Sequence record: LR745206.1
Reading direction: 5' to 3' (one strand)
DNA: 64,000 bases
Below, piece by piece: positions 17,614 to 48,759 of this stretch. Under the pieces are notes generated by a model, which did not search any database, was not told where the DNA came from, and saw nothing but the letters and a program-made list of their open reading frames with translations. The position numbers and the translations under genes are program-made. Every line of letters begins with the position of its first letter. The first letter of the stretch is position 1.

Positions 17614-17925
17614 TTTTTATTTTTTATTTGTTTTTGTTTACCTACTCTGTTAGGGATTTTCAGTTATCTCCCACTAAAATCTTTTTTATCCCCATAGAAA
17701 TATGGAGGTTAAGATTTAGTAAATTAAAAAAGGTGATATAAAATTATTTATTCATGCGTTGAATGATATATATATTACGATGGAAATATTTAAAAGGTAG
17801 CTTTTTTGACGAAAAATCAAAAAAAATTTTACCGTCTTCGACAGGTCTCAAAAAATTTTTAAACTCAGACATCAGAAATAATCACACAAATTAGAATACA
17901 AATAAATATAAATAATATATAGATA

Positions 17926-30016: not shown

Positions 30017-31972
30017 TTAAACTTTCTCGTAATGTGAGAAGACCATATTATAATCACCTCTACCAGAAGTTATTGTTCTTAGGTTAGTCATATAACCAAA
30101 CATCCTAGATATAGGAACGGTGCCGGTGATATATTTCAATTCACCCTTATTATCCATTTCGGATATAATACCTTTCCTCTTACTAAAATCACTAACAACT
30201 CCACCAACATAATCTTCTGGTGTTATGATATTAGTATTCATAATAGGCTCCAATAAACAAGGATCACATTTTTCCAAAGCTGATCTAAATGCTAACTGAG
30301 CTACCATTTCAAATGAGTAAGCATCAGAGTCAACATTATGATAACTACCATCAAGAAGTCTAACTTTAAGATTTTGAACAGGGTAACCAAAAGCACCATT
30401 ACTCAAACAATTCTTAAATCCTTTTTCAATAGCTGGTATATACTCTTTTGGAATATTACCACCAGTAACTTCATTGATGAATTGTAAACCTTCTACATCA
30501 TCATCAGCAGGTCCAATCTCAATAGAGATATCGGCAAATTTACCCTTACCACCAGTTTGTTTACTCAAAACCTCTTTGTGTAAAACAGTTTTCTGTAATC
30601 TTTCCTTATGAGCAACCTTAGGGACACCCTTAGTAACCTCAACACCAAAATCGGTTTGTAATCTACTTATAATAACATCAAGGTGTAACTCACCCATACC
30701 ACTAAGAATAGTCTGACCAGCTTCATTACTCTTAACTATAAGAGTTGGATCCTCTTCCGTTAGCTTAGATAAAGCAACTGATATCTTATCATAATCAACT
30801 TGAGTTTTTGGTTCGATAGCTATTGATATAACTGGGTCAGGAAAATTCATAGACATCAACTCCACAGGATTATCAACATCACAAATTGTTTGACCAGTGT
30901 TAGTATTTTTCAGACCAACAACCGTAACTATATCACCAGCTACCGCAACATCAACAGCTTTCTTATTTTGAGCATGCATCTGGAATATTCTAGATATTCT
31001 TTCATGTTCATTCGTATAAGGATTCAAAACAACATCACCTGGTTTTAATTGACCGGAGTATATTCTTATGAACGTAAGTTTTCCATGTTTATCAGTCATA
31101 ATCTTAAATACCAAAGCACTAAATGGATCCTCTACTCTATTACCTTTATCTTCTGGACTAGGTAATATATTAATAATAGTATCCAATAAAGTTTGAACTC
31201 CTTTGTTCTTAAAGGCAGAGCCACAAAGAACCGGGATAGCTAAGTTATTAAGGCAAATATCATGTAGAGCCTCATTAATACCATCAACAGTAACTTCATC
31301 ATTCAAATAAGACATCATAAACTTATCATTAAGATCAGATATCTGCTCCAACATAATACTTCTATATTCTTTAGAAATATCAATCATATGATCTGGTATA
31401 GTTTCGATGGAAACAACTTCACCCATCTCACCTGATTGTTTTATAGCAACCATATTTATTAGGTCAATAATACCTTCGAAGTCTGTCTCAGCACCAATTG
31501 GTAACTGTATAGCAATCGGATTAGCATTAAGTCTTTCTCTTATTTGTTTACACACCGATAAGAAGTCAGAACCAACTCTATCCATTTTATTAACAAACGC
31601 AACACGACTCACACCATACTCATTGGCTAATCTCCAATTCGTTTCTGATTGAGGTTCGACACCATCAACAGCAGAGAAAAGGAATACTAAACCATCAAGA
31701 ACTCTTAATGATCTATTTACCTCAACTGTAAAGTCAACGTGACCTGGGGTATCAATGATATTAATTTTATTATTGTTCCAATAGCAAGTTGTAGCAGCCG
31801 AAGTAATTGTTATACCACGGTCTCTTTCTTGAACCATATGGTCCATAGTTGTATTACCATCATGTACTTCACCAATTTTGTGATTTACACCTGTGTAATA
31901 AAGAATTCTTTCGGTTAGGGTTGTTTTACCTGAGTCGATGTGGGCGACGATGCCTATATTTCTTGTTTTCAT
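30017..31972 (-). CDS. fusA: elongation factor G
   Basis: [42 protein letters not shown]; ATG at 31972. Confidence 0.97.
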
Positions 31973-32059
31973 AATTTTCAAATTTTTATTTAAACCAACA
32001 TCTTCCGAAGCCTCTCTTATGAGAAGTTGTTAATTTTGTTAATAAAGTTTAGGGAATAA

Positions 32060-32094
32060 AAATTTAGTCAATCACCAAGGATTTGGGTGATTGA
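32060..32094 (-). terminator. terminator-like hairpin in the fusA leader
   Basis: TCAATCACC/GGTGATTGA stem 1 nt after the leader stop, followed by AAATTTTT. Confidence 0.6.
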
Positions 32095-32095
32095 A

Positions 32096-32131
32096 TTATA
32101 AAACAGCTCGTATGATAATTACGTTTTTCAT
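32096..32131 (-). CDS. putative fusA leader peptide MKNVIIIRAVL
   Basis: Hand-translated; between TATATTTG (32176-32183) and the hairpin. Confidence 0.65.
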   Translation of the reverse strand: MKNVIIIRAVL

Positions 32132-32194
32132 TATTCGTTATATATTACTTTCGTAAATAGTTTATTTTCCGATTACAAATATAAGAAAATAAAC

Positions 32195-33613
32195 TTAAAT
32201 CCTGTCAAATAAAATTTGTTTTTTACAACCTTCGATAACATTTAAAAATTCATTAGTCTTTTCAACGCCAAATAATGGTATGTATAATGTATTAACAACC
32301 AATAATAGTGAATATAAATTAGATAACTCAACTTCATAATTTTCGGAAGCCCAAGGTTTATTATCATTTATATATTTGTTTGCAAATTTAACCAATTCAT
32401 TAGTCTTACATAAAGCATCTTTAACTTTAAAGTTATCCCATAAATCTACAACAGAATCTTTATAACTATTTATTGTATCATTGAATGAATCTTCTGGTAA
32501 ACAATTTGGTCTGCGACCACATTTTATATCAATTAAATGTAATACTCTTGATACTAAATTTCCCCAATCATTTACAATTTCAGAATTCCATATTTGTTTA
32601 AGTTCATCATCATCCCAAGATGAATTAGCATAAGTATTTAATCTAAGAGCATAATACCTAACTGGGTATAATCCATACTTATCTAATTGATCAATTGGAT
32701 CTACAACATTACCAATTGATTTGGAAATCTTACGACCATCTTTATCGAGAATAGTACCATGAACTAGTAATTTATCGGTGTGTTTTATATTCTCAGCTTC
32801 TAGAAAGGATTGAAATATAACTCCCTGGAACCTTATATTATCTGGTCCACAGAGTTGTATAACTCTATTCCAGTTGAAATTATCTGTTAGATACCCAGCA
32901 GCGAAGATGTAATTGAGTAAAGCATCAAACCAGACATAAATAACTTGGTCTTCGTCATTTGGTACAGAAACACCCCAAGGGCAATTCTTTCTTACTCTAG
33001 ATATAGATATATCATCAGAATCTATAATTAGATTCCTTAATTCGTTTATTTTTGATATTGGTTCTAAGAACGTTGGATTATTTTCAATCCATTTTAGTAG
33101 TGAGTCTCTGTACTTAGATAATCTAAAGAAATAATTTTCCTCATCTACTATTTTTATTTCGGTTGTTGTATGATCTTGGCATTTACCATCCACCAATTCG
33201 GAATCTTTTTTAGCTGATTCACATCCAACACAATATTTACCCTTATATGAGCCTTTGTATATATCACCGTTGTTTAAGAATTTTGTCCAAATGGATTGCA
33301 CTTTCTCGTGGTGAGAGATGTCAGAGGTTTTATAAAAGGAATCATAGTCTATGTTAAATTTAACACAAAAGTCCTTCCAAGACGTTGTTAGGTTGTTTAT
33401 ATGTTGTTCTGGTGTTATACCAAGCTCTTGAGATTTCTCCCAGACTTTCAAACCATGTTCATCCAATCCAATGTTAAAATGAACATCATTTTTAATTTTA
33501 AACCATTTTGAAAGAGCATCTCCCAATATAAATTCGAAAGCGTGTCCAATATGTGGAACTGAGTTCACATATGGTAATGTTGTTGTTATAAATATATTTT
33601 CTGCGATTTCTAT
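32195..33613 (-). CDS. metG: methionyl-tRNA synthetase lacking the C-terminal OB domain; probable AUA start
   Basis: FITTTLPYVNSVPHIGH, YCVGCE Zn knuckle, YVWFDAL, KISKS; no in-frame ATG before the first motif. Confidence 0.9.
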   Translation of the reverse strand: MEIAENIFITTTLPYVNSVPHIGHAFEFILGDALSKWFKIKNDVHFNIGLDEHGLKVWEKSQELGITPEQHINNLTTSWKDFCVKFNIDYDSFYKTSDISHHEKVQSIWTKFLNNGDIYKGSYKGKYCVGCESAKKDSELVDGKCQDHTTTEIKIVDEENYFFRLSKYRDSLLKWIENNPTFLEPISKINELRNLIIDSDDISISRVRKNCPWGVSVPNDEDQVIYVWFDALLNYIFAAGYLTDNFNWNRVIQLCGPDNIRFQGVIFQSFLEAENIKHTDKLLVHGTILDKDGRKISKSIGNVVDPIDQLDKYGLYPVRYYALRLNTYANSSWDDDELKQIWNSEIVNDWGNLVSRVLHLIDIKCGRRPNCLPEDSFNDTINSYKDSVVDLWDNFKVKDALCKTNELVKFANKYINDNKPWASENYEVELSNLYSLLLVVNTLYIPLFGVEKTNEFLNVIEGCKKQILFDRI

Positions 33614-33906
33614 GTTTTTTTAAATAATAAATAATTCAATCTAATTTCTCTAATAACTGGTTTTAATAAATCTAACATTTCTTTATCACATTCAAATTTA
33701 TCACCTATTTCAGTATTATATATGTAATGTATTTCTCCTGTGTCAAAATTACCACTATCTTCTTCTAATATATTGTTCTTTATTAGGTAATAAACAACCG
33801 AATTGGGTATTTTTATTGCCTTTTTTCGTGGATGCCACTTACTTAATATACAATTTAATGTTGGTTCGATAGTTAGTTCTCGACCATAAAATATCTCTTT
33901 CAGCAT
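33610..33906 (-). CDS. hypothetical protein, C-tag
   Basis: IREIRLNYLL; TAG overlaps candidate ATA start of metG. Confidence 0.65.
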   Translation of the reverse strand: MLKEIFYGRELTIEPTLNCILSKWHPRKKAIKIPNSVVYYLIKNNILEEDSGNFDTGEIHYIYNTEIGDKFECDKEMLDLLKPVIREIRLNYLLFKKT

Positions 33907-34127
33907 TAAAATACAATAAAATAATCAAATATACTCATTCTATCCTCTTTAAGTAAAGATACACTCAATGGTACTTTTATATCATTATCATTATCTAGAA
34001 TTTTAATATTTTCATCTAGAATATCAAGTATTTCATAATCCACACCAGGTGTTAAAAGCTTACTAAATTGTTTTTTACATCTTATTAGCTTACCAATCTT
34101 TATCTTTTCACTTTTAATTTTTACCAT
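33906..34127 (-). CDS. 73-aa paralog family member 2
   Basis: IKSEKI.IG..I.C..LLTPG.DYEI..SIFDYF. Confidence 0.75.
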   Translation of the reverse strand: MVKIKSEKIKIGKLIRCKKQFSKLLTPGVDYEILDILDENIKILDNDNDIKVPLSVSLLKEDRMSIFDYFIVF

Positions 34128-34342
34128 ATTTGAAAATATCTGAAAATATTTGGACTTTCACTTTTATTCATCGACATAGACAAAGGGAAAGTTCTATCAT
34201 TTTCATTGTCCATTATGAAAATACTATCATCTGTAATTGAGATTATCTCATAATCCAATCCAGTTGTTAATAAAACAGCCATTGGTGTAATACATTTGAG
34301 TTTTTTACCAACAGCTATGTTTTCACTCTTAATTAATATCAT
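34121..34342 (-). CDS. 73-aa paralog family member 3
   Basis: Tandem paralog of the adjacent gene. Confidence 0.75.
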   Translation of the reverse strand: MILIKSENIAVGKKLKCITPMAVLLTTGLDYEIISITDDSIFIMDNENDRTFPLSMSMNKSESPNIFRYFQIW

Positions 34343-34377
34343 TTGTGTTTAATTTATACAAATATAAGGAAAATTAA

Positions 34378-35709
34378 TTATATTTCATAAATAATATTAA
34401 ATATTGGTTCCAAGTCCTCTATGATATACTTTAATGTAATTGATGTTGGTTTTGTTTTTGATGATTCTATCCACTCATCACAGAATAGATTCCAGAAAAA
34501 CTTATATAATAAATCATTAGCGATGCTAAGATCCATATTATCAAAAGCATTTAATATATCAGATTTATATTGTGACCAAATCTCTATTAATTTATCATCC
34601 TCTCCTATCCATTCGTTATCAATTTGTATTTGAATGAACTTCTTAGCGTTCTTAAACTTATTACTCATCTTCCAACCCATTCTCATCTTAGACTCATCTA
34701 TCTTAGTGTCCATACCCAATGTACCAGATGTTGACCAACTTCTTATACCATTAGCACCATATCTATCTATTAAAGGTTTTGGTGGTGTTGCATTACCACT
34801 CGACTTACTAAACTTATCACCGTTACCATCAAGTGTATGTCCTGTTATCATAATACTTTTCCAAGGTATTTGGTTATTTAAAAAGTAGGACATAGCTATT
34901 GTATAGAATGCCCAAGTTCTAATAATATCATGTGATTGAAATCTCATATCAAATATAGGACACTCTAAAGATGGTATTCCGGTGTGAGCTGACCAAGCTA
35001 ATTGTGGTGTTAGTGCTGATATAAACCAAGTATCGAACGTGGATGTTTCACCAGGAATCATAATTCCGAAATTTCTCTCTCTTGATATTGACCAGTCCCA
35101 TTTGATTTGTTCTAACCAATCATCTGCTCTTTTTTTGTGAGAGAAGGGTTTCCAATCTATCTTGTCTATCATTTCTTTTATTTTTGGTAAATGATCTTTT
35201 ATATTTATAAACCAGCCTTCACCAGTTTTTATTAAAGGAATCTCACCAGTTCTTTCGATTATCCCATCATCATTTAGTTCTGATTGTGATATAGATGTCT
35301 TTAATTTTTCTGACCATAAATATTCAGTTGTTGCTTTATAAGCAATTCCTCTTTCTTTTAATTTCTCAAATGCCATATAAGCAATATTAATTGATTGGTC
35401 ATCATAGGTATAATATCTTTGTTCACCAAAATTAATACCTGATAGATTAAATGTGTCATGATAATCTTTTGACTTGTTTATTGAGAAATCAATAATATTT
35501 TGTGTACCCTTTATTCCTTTGTTTGATGCAAGTTTACCAGTTGGTATTCCGTTGTTGTCAAAACAGAATGGATAAATTAAATTTTTACCAAGATATTTTT
35601 GATATCTAGCAATTATATCTCCTTGTGTATAAGAGAATATATGACCTATGTGTAGGTTACCACTTATTGTAGGTGGTGGTGTGTCGATTAAATAATTGTT
35701 TGTTTTCAT
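34378..35709 (-). CDS. valS: minimal valyl-tRNA synthetase (443 aa; CP1 editing region and C-terminal coil missing)
   Basis: DTPPPTISGNLHIGH, DWSISR, FDTWF, DIIRTW, KFSKS; Val-rich leader supports Val specificity. Confidence 0.9.
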   Translation of the reverse strand: MKTNNYLIDTPPPTISGNLHIGHIFSYTQGDIIARYQKYLGKNLIYPFCFDNNGIPTGKLASNKGIKGTQNIIDFSINKSKDYHDTFNLSGINFGEQRYYTYDDQSINIAYMAFEKLKERGIAYKATTEYLWSEKLKTSISQSELNDDGIIERTGEIPLIKTGEGWFINIKDHLPKIKEMIDKIDWKPFSHKKRADDWLEQIKWDWSISRERNFGIMIPGETSTFDTWFISALTPQLAWSAHTGIPSLECPIFDMRFQSHDIIRTWAFYTIAMSYFLNNQIPWKSIMITGHTLDGNGDKFSKSSGNATPPKPLIDRYGANGIRSWSTSGTLGMDTKIDESKMRMGWKMSNKFKNAKKFIQIQIDNEWIGEDDKLIEIWSQYKSDILNAFDNMDLSIANDLLYKFFWNLFCDEWIESSKTKPTSITLKYIIEDLEPIFNIIYEI

Positions 35710-47995: not shown

Positions 47996-48030
47996 ATATA
48001 TTTTTTAATTTACAAAGATAAGGAAAAATA

Positions 48031-48060
48031 AAAAACCCACCATTTTTGGTGGGTTTTTTA
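48031..48060 (-). terminator. terminator after the release-factor gene
   Basis: AAAAACCCACCA/TGGTGGGTTTTT abutting the TAA stop. Confidence 0.85.
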
Positions 48061-48759
48061 TTAGGATTTATTTTTATGTAAGGATTTAATCTGACCCTTG
48101 TACAACTCTTTAATTGTTATTCTTTTATTTGTGATATGATCCAAAACCCACCCATCTTGTTCTCTATATGTTCGTCTTTTATCATTTCTGTTACCATATC
48201 CGATTTGGTTGAATCTAGCTTCTTTTATTTCATCATTTTTAGAACTATCATTAATTGATTGTAATTTTTCCTCTAACCTCTTCCAAGCAGCTTCTTCGTT
48301 TTTACCTTGTGTTCTGCTTTCCTCTGAACGCACCATTATACCACTTGGTTTATGTAATAGTATAACACAAGTTGATCTTCTGTTGACATTTTGACCGCCT
48401 TTACCACCAGAGCAGGTATATTGACGCTCTACATCACCTTTATTAATAATAATTTTTTGATTTTGATTTTCGTTCATAACCGCAACTGTTACAGTGCTTG
48501 TTTGAACTCTACCTCTTTTTTCAGTTGGAGGTATTCTTTGCCATCTATGTCCACCTACTTCGTTCTCAAAGAACTTACCGACTCCGTTTCCAGTCAGTCA
48601 TATCGAGACATATCCTGGTATTCAGTGTTCTACTTTATAGGAGAATCCGTTTAGGTTAGCAGTCTTTTTATAGATATCTGCCATATCATTTACAAGAAGT
48701 TTGGCATCTTCACCACCTTCAGCTGCTCGAAGTTCGAGTTTAATTGTTTGTGTTTTCAT
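48061..48759 (-). CDS. prfA: RF1-like peptide chain release factor (232 codons, no domain 1) with two in-frame TGA codons
   Basis: Hand-translated LELRAAEGGEDAKL...VEH*IPGYVSI*LTG...GGHRWQRIPPTEKRGRVQTSTVTVAV...GGKGGQNVN; TGA at 48624-48622 and 48600-48598. Confidence 0.9.

Follow-up and report, generated by a model that had tools for sequence, protein, structure and literature searches.

A stop-gated RF1-type release factor gene in a 634-kb bacteriophage

How can a phage produce a peptide chain release factor from a gene that is interrupted by two in-frame UGA codons, when UGA serves as an ordinary stop elsewhere in the same genome? The question is raised by a locus in the first 64,000 nucleotides (hereafter, the window) of GenBank record LR745206.1, an unannotated uncultured phage genome of 634,780 bp. 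The genome is one of the four largest complete, manually curated and circularised genomes of Al-Shayeb et al. 2020, belongs to the Mahaphage clade, and its host is predicted to be Bacteroidetes (PMC7162821). The T9SS-sorting domains found in proteins encoded by the window fit that host, and the window also encodes EF-G and two class-I aaRS genes. A first-pass annotation, made from the sequence alone, had described the locus as an RF1-like release factor gene gated by two UGA codons and had proposed that the factor is made only when host RF2 activity falls or a UGA suppressor is present. The observation itself proved correct in all its sequence claims, including the translation, whereas the interpretation is supported only in part. 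The elements of the locus, all on the minus strand, are as follows.

48061..48759 (-), the complete recoded gene for a domain-1-less RF1-like release factor: 230 sense codons, two in-frame UGA codons and a TAA stop (48063-48061), with the ATG at 48759-48757
48625..48759 (-), segment 1, 45 codons, aligning to residues 109-143 of Thermus RF1 and including the GGED tip that reads the first stop-codon base
48622..48624 (-), first in-frame UGA (TGA-A), 25 codons before the His of the HRW motif
48601..48621 (-), seven codons between the stops (IPGYVSI), conserved as protein and therefore translated
48598..48600 (-), second in-frame UGA (TGA-C), 17 codons before the His of HRW and corresponding to about residue 161 of Thermus RF1
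48064..48597 (-), segment 3, 178 codons: the rest of the codon-recognition domain, the GGQ domain and domain 4
48523..48531 (-), PPT tripeptide (the RF1-type PxT "anticodon"), within HRWQRIPPTEKRGRVQTS
48391..48399 (-), GGQ catalytic motif
48027..48062 (-), intrinsic terminator hairpin with a T run, directly after the TAA (bidirectional)
48577..48598 (-), small hairpin overlapping or following the second UGA, not conserved beyond close relatives and probably incidental

The terminator hairpin is strong and has 16 pairs, and four terminator-like sites were found against 0.3 expected. A mechanical list of open reading frames shows only the 45-aa piece and a 138-aa piece (48477-48061) which starts at an internal ATG, the latter being what a standard gene caller sees. 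To establish what the interrupted frame encodes, its pieces were searched separately. The 45-aa piece matches Pfam PCRF (positions 100-139, E=2e-5) and the RF1 profile PRK00591 at positions 104-143 (26.1 bits), while the 178-aa piece matches PCRF 158-194, the RF-1 domain at 3-114 (E=4e-24) and PRK00591 at 163-335 with 152.7 bits. The same piece scores 91.9 bits for RF2 and 49.8 for PrfH. The pieces are therefore colinear parts of one RF1-like protein which begins where domain 2 of RF1 begins: the ATG at 48759 aligns to RF1 profile position about 100-104, stop codons lie upstream, and the N-terminal domain 1 (about 100 residues) is absent. Both scores fall below the NCBIfam equivalog cut-off of 400. 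Against solved structures, RF1 chains score E about 1e-26 and RF2 chains about 1e-14. In the alignment to Thermus RF1, Gly116, Gly117, Glu118, Gln181, Pro184, Thr186, Glu187 and Thr194 are in register, Glu119 is Asp, and His193, which is conserved in RF1 and RF2, is replaced by Gln, so that the specificity could differ from that of RF1. In RF1 these residues take part in reading UAA and UAG.

The lack of domain 1 is shared with PrfH (RF-H), the release factor paralogue paired with RtcB, which also keeps the codon-recognition-like domain and the GGQ domain. However, the TIGR03072 score of 49.8 is well below the cut-off of 166.65, the RF1 decoding residues are retained, and no RtcB gene is adjacent, the neighbouring ORFs being of 123 and 79 aa. 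RtcB is likewise missing next to two cellular copies of the gene (L127 and L120), and in L179, a relative discussed below, an RtcB gene lies 4 kb away but is not adjacent. PrfH genes are not reported to be recoded (PMC1586002).

Two stops in a conserved gene, in a record without annotation, may indicate a pseudogene or an assembly error. Conservation of the UGA columns among homologues and the strength of selection on both sides of them had been proposed beforehand as a check, and both came out in favour of the gating idea. Most database relatives are annotated as fragments of 135-138 aa or about 175 aa, yet at the DNA level relatives from independent assemblies and different samples have stops at the same columns. 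TGA is present at both columns in 13 distinct genes, down to about 50% protein identity, an arrangement far beyond chance. Eleven further genes have TGA only at the second column, eleven have TGA at the second column plus one just after codon 30, and two have TGA plus TAG, whereas one relative (L178) has the first-column TGA plus a TGA which replaces the conserved Trp of the HRW motif. In total, the first column holds TGA in 17 distinct genes and the second column holds a stop in 37 (35 TGA, 2 TAG). Among the closer relatives, synonymous sites in the 45-codon N-terminal piece are saturated (pS 0.64-0.96), yet dN/dS is 0.05-0.19, and the value is similar downstream. The region upstream of the first stop is therefore translated in this frame and the stops themselves are preserved. 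Given these data and the manual curation of the genome (PMC7162821), the pseudogene or error explanation is already contradicted and is regarded as highly improbable.

The same data bear on the possibility that separate products are made, namely a 45-aa peptide plus a C-terminal protein arising from re-initiation after the second UGA or from the internal ATG at 48477, the latter as a GGQ-only rescue factor like ArfB. Gene callers do predict the 138-aa ORF, and in two relatives (L004 and L172) an ATG directly follows the second TGA. In the window, however, CTG follows the stop, the seven codons between the stops (LPGYVAL, RDGFVSL, TPGLVSI and others in relatives) and the PPT region upstream of ATG 48477 are under strong purifying selection, and segment 1 carries part of the same fold. 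This alternative seems unlikely. Ribosomal bypass between the two stops was rejected as well, because the seven intervening codons are conserved as protein and single-stop relatives exist.

A further explanation is that the phage switches to a TGA=Trp code (code 4) for part of its genome and that this gene is simply written in that code. Some pipelines have indeed translated relatives with W at the TGAs, and code-4 phages that encode RF1 are known (bioRxiv 10.1101/2021.08.26.457843). The first-pass annotation had stated that TGA ends many other genes here, and the stops at 492 and 13229 are TGA. In the whole genome, of 305 ORFs of at least 200 aa, 236 end in TAA, 47 in TGA and 22 in TAG. A genome-wide search for other UGA-interrupted genes and for a tRNA with a UCA anticodon, which had been proposed beforehand as a check, gave a negative answer on both counts. 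Scans for ORFs bridged by TGA or TAG (codes 4 and 15) in the window and the genome found only this gene with coding support on both sides, as two whole-genome candidates proved to be adjacent separate genes. None of the 59 tRNAs has a UCA, CUA or UUA anticodon, and no UCA anticodon occurs among 867 tRNAs in 1.94 Mb of relatives. In the relatives' flanks TGA likewise ends ordinary genes, in at least 10 relatives the RF gene is the only convincing ORF bridged by TGA, and L172 has uninterrupted terminase and sheath genes. A comparison of coding density between codes was not discriminating for 20-kb loci, apart from hinting at TAG recoding in some relatives. A genome-wide or late-gene TGA=Trp code is therefore excluded for this phage. 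In the TGA-recoded Jade phages a phage-encoded RF1 is also linked to UGA decoding as Trp, as part of a module with a suppressor tRNA and TrpRS, but there the RF1 is written in the standard code and many late genes contain TGA (bioRxiv 10.1101/2021.08.26.457843), while here only the RF gene contains TGA and no tRNA(UCA) exists. The gene is also the only class-I RF gene in the genome.

Is the arrangement peculiar to this phage? Scans of GTDB genomes and IMG/VR showed that the gene belongs to a family of about 130 distinct domain-1-less RF1-like genes in huge phages and Myxococcota. High-GC relatives have no in-frame stop at these columns. Instead, their first 34 or so codons (MIxEIRAAEGGxDAKLLV...RRGL) lie in the -1 frame relative to the rest, and that frame ends in CTT TGA or CTT TAG, usually 3-6 nt after GGAGG, which is a literal prfB-type +1 frameshift cassette. 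Among the distinct genes, 81 have CTT plus a stop at a fixed codon (51 TGA, 28 TAG and 2 TAA, 58 of them with an SD-like 4-mer upstream), 27 have two in-frame stops, 19 have one, two are unclear and one (L179) is uninterrupted. By contrast, 70 of 71 canonical RF1 genes recovered in the same searches are intact. A metagenome scan with back-translated patterns was too generic and returned mostly canonical RF1 genes, which were then used as the control set. The carriers include huge phages, with the 735-, 642- and 636-kb genomes LR756501, LR756502 and LR756504 having in-frame stops in this gene, and cellular genomes, mostly Myxococcota, among them the Minicystis rosea chromosome and Pyxidicoccus fallax. 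No conserved operon partner was found in Minicystis or Pyxidicoccus.

A tree of the C-terminal pieces separates canonical RF1 (100% SH-aLRT support) from the family, places the low-GC in-frame-stop clade (97%) inside frameshift-type members, and requires at least four independent switches between frameshift and in-frame stop. Some low-GC phages have moved a CTT TAG C shift site without an SD to the second-column region. All 70 in-frame stops of the family are followed by A or C, and 67 of them are TGA; UGA-A and UGA-C are the weakest termination contexts known in E. coli. The constant feature across the family is thus a premature, weakly terminated stop before the PxT and GGQ motifs, whereas its position and the mechanism of its bypass vary. 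L178 lost the second-column stop but gained another and still has two, which suggests that the number of stops is itself under selection.

What, then, reads the UGA codons? The first-pass annotation had pointed to a hairpin after the second TGA and had left selenocysteine open. The hairpin exists, but it is present only in the closest relatives and shows no covariation, so there is no SECIS-like element. The genome has no tRNA-Sec, the positions are variable surface residues, and some relatives have TAG at the same column, all of which leaves selenocysteine very unlikely. Trp, which had been said to fit both positions, is the most likely inserted residue, although neither column is a conserved Trp in uninterrupted or single-stop relatives, and other relatives have T, L, E, Q, H, R, I or K at the second column. 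The best available hint comes from L178, in which a TGA sits at the family's near-invariant Trp (W in 115 of 130 genes).

The phage encodes one tRNA-Trp(CCA), at LR745206.1 343033-343104. Its top anticodon-stem pair is an A27.C43 mismatch, marked by Infernal as non-standard, so that the anticodon stem has 4 bp; its D-stem pair is U11-A24, and it has A59 and G9. Such features have been linked to UGA reading by tRNA-Trp(CCA): unpairing 27:43 (C27A) raises UGA read-through in E. coli in vivo, G24A is the classical Hirsh UGA suppressor, and a C27A/G24A/G59A triple mutant was selected on UGA-programmed ribosomes (PMC13092985), although that study did not examine phages. Two other phages with double-TGA RF genes (L202, L217) also have tRNA-Trp with an unpaired 27:43, so that the feature occurs in three of four tRNA-Trp of phages with in-frame TGAs against none of about eleven from frameshift-type or other loci, which have 5-bp stems. 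This association looked strong but weakened once the background was measured, since 8 of 57 tRNAs of this phage and 14% of other tRNAs in low-GC relatives have an unpaired 27:43, against 3 of 9 tRNA-Trp, a difference which is not significant, and the present sample does not decide whether the feature is specific to tRNA-Trp or goes with in-frame UGA. A BLAST search of the tRNA-Trp against GenBank phages gave no informative relatives in the other huge phages. The tRNA, whose function is untested, is therefore treated as a plausible decoder and not as an established one.

The explanation favoured here, with moderate confidence, is that programmed read-through of two UGA codons eight codons apart, probably inserting Trp, ties the synthesis of an auxiliary RF1-type class-I release factor to weak RF2 termination. 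In this view, host RF2 would compete at each UGA with the near-cognate tRNA-Trp(CCA), and output would scale roughly with the square of the ratio of read-through to termination, so that the factor would be made in quantity only when RF2 termination is slow relative to Trp-tRNA decoding; the ratio would rise when RF2 is limiting or when the phage tRNA-Trp, a candidate for raising it, is abundant. The product is predicted to terminate at UAA and UAG. As UAA ends 77% of the long ORFs of this phage, the factor could take over UAA load and free RF2 for UGA, which would restore termination at the gate and close an indirect negative feedback loop. One must bear in mind that the analysis demonstrates the anatomy of the gene, its conservation, the selection on both sides of the stops, the standard genetic code, the absence of a UCA suppressor and the family-wide stop gating, while Trp insertion, dependence on RF2, the role of the phage tRNA-Trp and the codon specificity and physiological role of the factor are inferred. 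There are no expression data, and without an efficient decoder two UGAs in series could yield 0.01% or less. An RF1-type factor is not expected to read UGA, hence the feedback is indirect at best. In addition, relatives with an in-frame TAG or a CTT-TAG site, and relatives that carry amber-suppressor tRNAs next to the gene, show that a pure RF2-sensing logic does not hold across the family. Many relatives carry an amber-suppressor tRNA(CUA) 1-4 kb from this gene and appear to be TAG-recoded, which is puzzling, since an RF1-type factor should oppose that recoding, and the role of the family is therefore not understood. The proposal of the first-pass annotation that the switch responds to a fall in RF2 activity thus remains an inference, whereas its analogy with prfB turned out to be stronger than suspected.

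Two other readings of the gate have to be considered. The stops may be only an attenuator which keeps a potentially harmful release factor at a constant, very low level without sensing anything. Overexpression of release factors reduces fitness (PMC12421855), and the use of either TGA or TAG, by frameshift or by read-through, fits the idea that any leaky barrier will do. On the other hand, a weak promoter or start codon would do the same job more cheaply, stop-based barriers have been kept across about 130 genes through repeated turnover of position and mechanism, and TAA is nearly absent (2 of 81 shift sites and 0 of 70 in-frame stops), which together point to dependence on the stop-decoding step itself. 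This reading is considered unlikely. Slightly less likely still is direct autoregulation as in prfB, in which a factor of broadened specificity would itself terminate at its own UGA (or UAG) codons. The prfB-like cassette of 81 relatives and the replacement of His193 by Gln in 58 of 130 members speak for it, and for CTT-TAG members direct RF1-type autoregulation is straightforward. However, the PxT, Gln181 and Thr194 equivalents are all RF1-type and predict no UGA reading, the profile score is higher for RF1 than for RF2, and release activity was not assayed.

Compared with prfB, in which a +1 frameshift at CUU UGA permits full-length synthesis when the early stop is decoded slowly, the gene of the window shares a conserved premature stop that must be bypassed, but it has two in-frame UGAs and no shift site, and its protein is RF1-type and lacks domain 1. 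The family shift sites use TAG in 28 of 81 cases, while Prince et al. 2025 found no TAG among 8,164 prfB motifs and no programmed frameshift in prfA (PMC12421855). Atkins et al. 2016 state that no RF2 gene has an early in-frame UGA with the ORF continuing in frame, and that the UAG/RF1 counterpart is unknown (PMC5009743). The release factor gene of Mimivirus and Megavirus also needs two recoding events at internal stops, one frameshift and one read-through (PMC3521657), but it encodes an eRF1 homologue in a virus of amoebae, whereas here the factor is a bacterial RF1 homologue in a phage and both events are read-through. Al-Shayeb et al. mention RF genes in huge phages but not their recoding. 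No description of the family was found in the literature searched, although, this literature being incomplete, prior description cannot be excluded.

Regulation of a release factor gene through its own substrate, a stop codon, has so far rested on one bacterial case (prfB) and one giant-virus curiosity. In-frame stop read-through in bacterial RF genes, recoding in RF1 genes and TAG in the prfB cassette were stated to be unknown or never to occur, and this family shows all three, in about 130 genes from the largest known phages and from cellular Myxococcota. These genes are systematically mis-annotated as 135-138-aa fragments. The finding raises the question of what a domain-1-less RF1 does during phage takeover of translation, and suggests a test of whether phage tRNA-Trp(CCA) variants act as anticodon-unchanged UGA decoders. 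A bolder and only tentative reading is that huge phages and Myxococcota share an undescribed fourth kind of bacterial class-I release factor, RF1-like and lacking domain 1, the synthesis of which is tied to failure of termination at a premature stop, by a prfB-type +1 shift at CUU-UGA/UAG or by single or double stop read-through, and which would act as a sensor and effector of cellular termination capacity. In the largest phages it would form a two-part switch with a phage tRNA-Trp(CCA) that reads UGA without a changed anticodon, and this would be the in-frame-stop regulation of a release factor gene that was postulated before prfB was sequenced and never found. The family offers a natural series of interchangeable recoding devices (shift or read-through, UGA or UAG, one stop or two) on one protein scaffold, which suits dissection of how termination efficiency is sensed.

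Apart from the release-factor gene, the following features were detected in the window and elsewhere in LR745206.1:
window 17639-17673, minus strand, Rfam DUF805b RNA motif;
window 30017-35709, minus strand, cluster of translation genes;
LR745206.1 343033-343104 (outside the window; 29033-29104 of L265, a piece of this record), tRNA-Trp(CCA);
LR745206.1 407364-407437 and 419836-419923 (outside the window), two tRNA-like genes.

The DUF805b motif scored 38.2 bits, which is above the gathering score, and is located just upstream of the gene coding for the 832-aa T9SS/CHU_C protein (17613-15115). The translation cluster comprises the genes for an EF-G-like protein (654 aa, 30017-31981), a MetRS-like protein (457 aa, 32195-33568) and an unusually short class-I aaRS (443 aa, 34378-35709). 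The two tRNA-like genes exhibit irregular anticodon loops (called by ARAGORN as a 4-base ‘gtag’ and a 2-base ‘gt’), and may represent either frameshift-suppressor-like tRNAs or mis-calls. Meanwhile, the phage tRNA-Trp(CCA) has an A27.C43 mismatch, resulting in a 4-bp anticodon stem, together with U11-A24, A59 and G9, i.e. features that are linked to UGA reading in E. coli tRNA-Trp mutants.

The same domain-1-less RF1-like gene, equipped with a CTT-TGA/TAG +1 frameshift cassette and having no conserved neighbours, is also carried by cellular genomes of Myxococcota, Pirellulaceae, Bryobacterales and Armatimonadota, including Minicystis rosea (CP016211, region 5.21 Mb; locus L127), Pyxidicoccus fallax (locus L120) and about 45 other genome loci. 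In the low-GC phages L188, L189, L219, L229 and L231, the CTT TAG C shift site lacks an SD-like element and sits at codon 46, near the column of the second UGA of the window, instead of codon 30. In two other relatives (L176, 2-361; L179, 9390-9902), an IF3 gene lies directly upstream of the RF1-like gene; L179 is the only uninterrupted member of the family found, and it also has RtcB 4 kb upstream.

In addition, amber-suppressor tRNA(CUA) genes were found next to the RF1-like gene, about 1-4 kb downstream of it, in many of the relatives from IMG/VR (L202, L207, L210, L213, L214, L216-L219, L222, L229, L233, L237, L239 and L249), and these loci gain coding density when TAG is read as sense. 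The presence of an RF1-type factor beside an amber suppressor is paradoxical.
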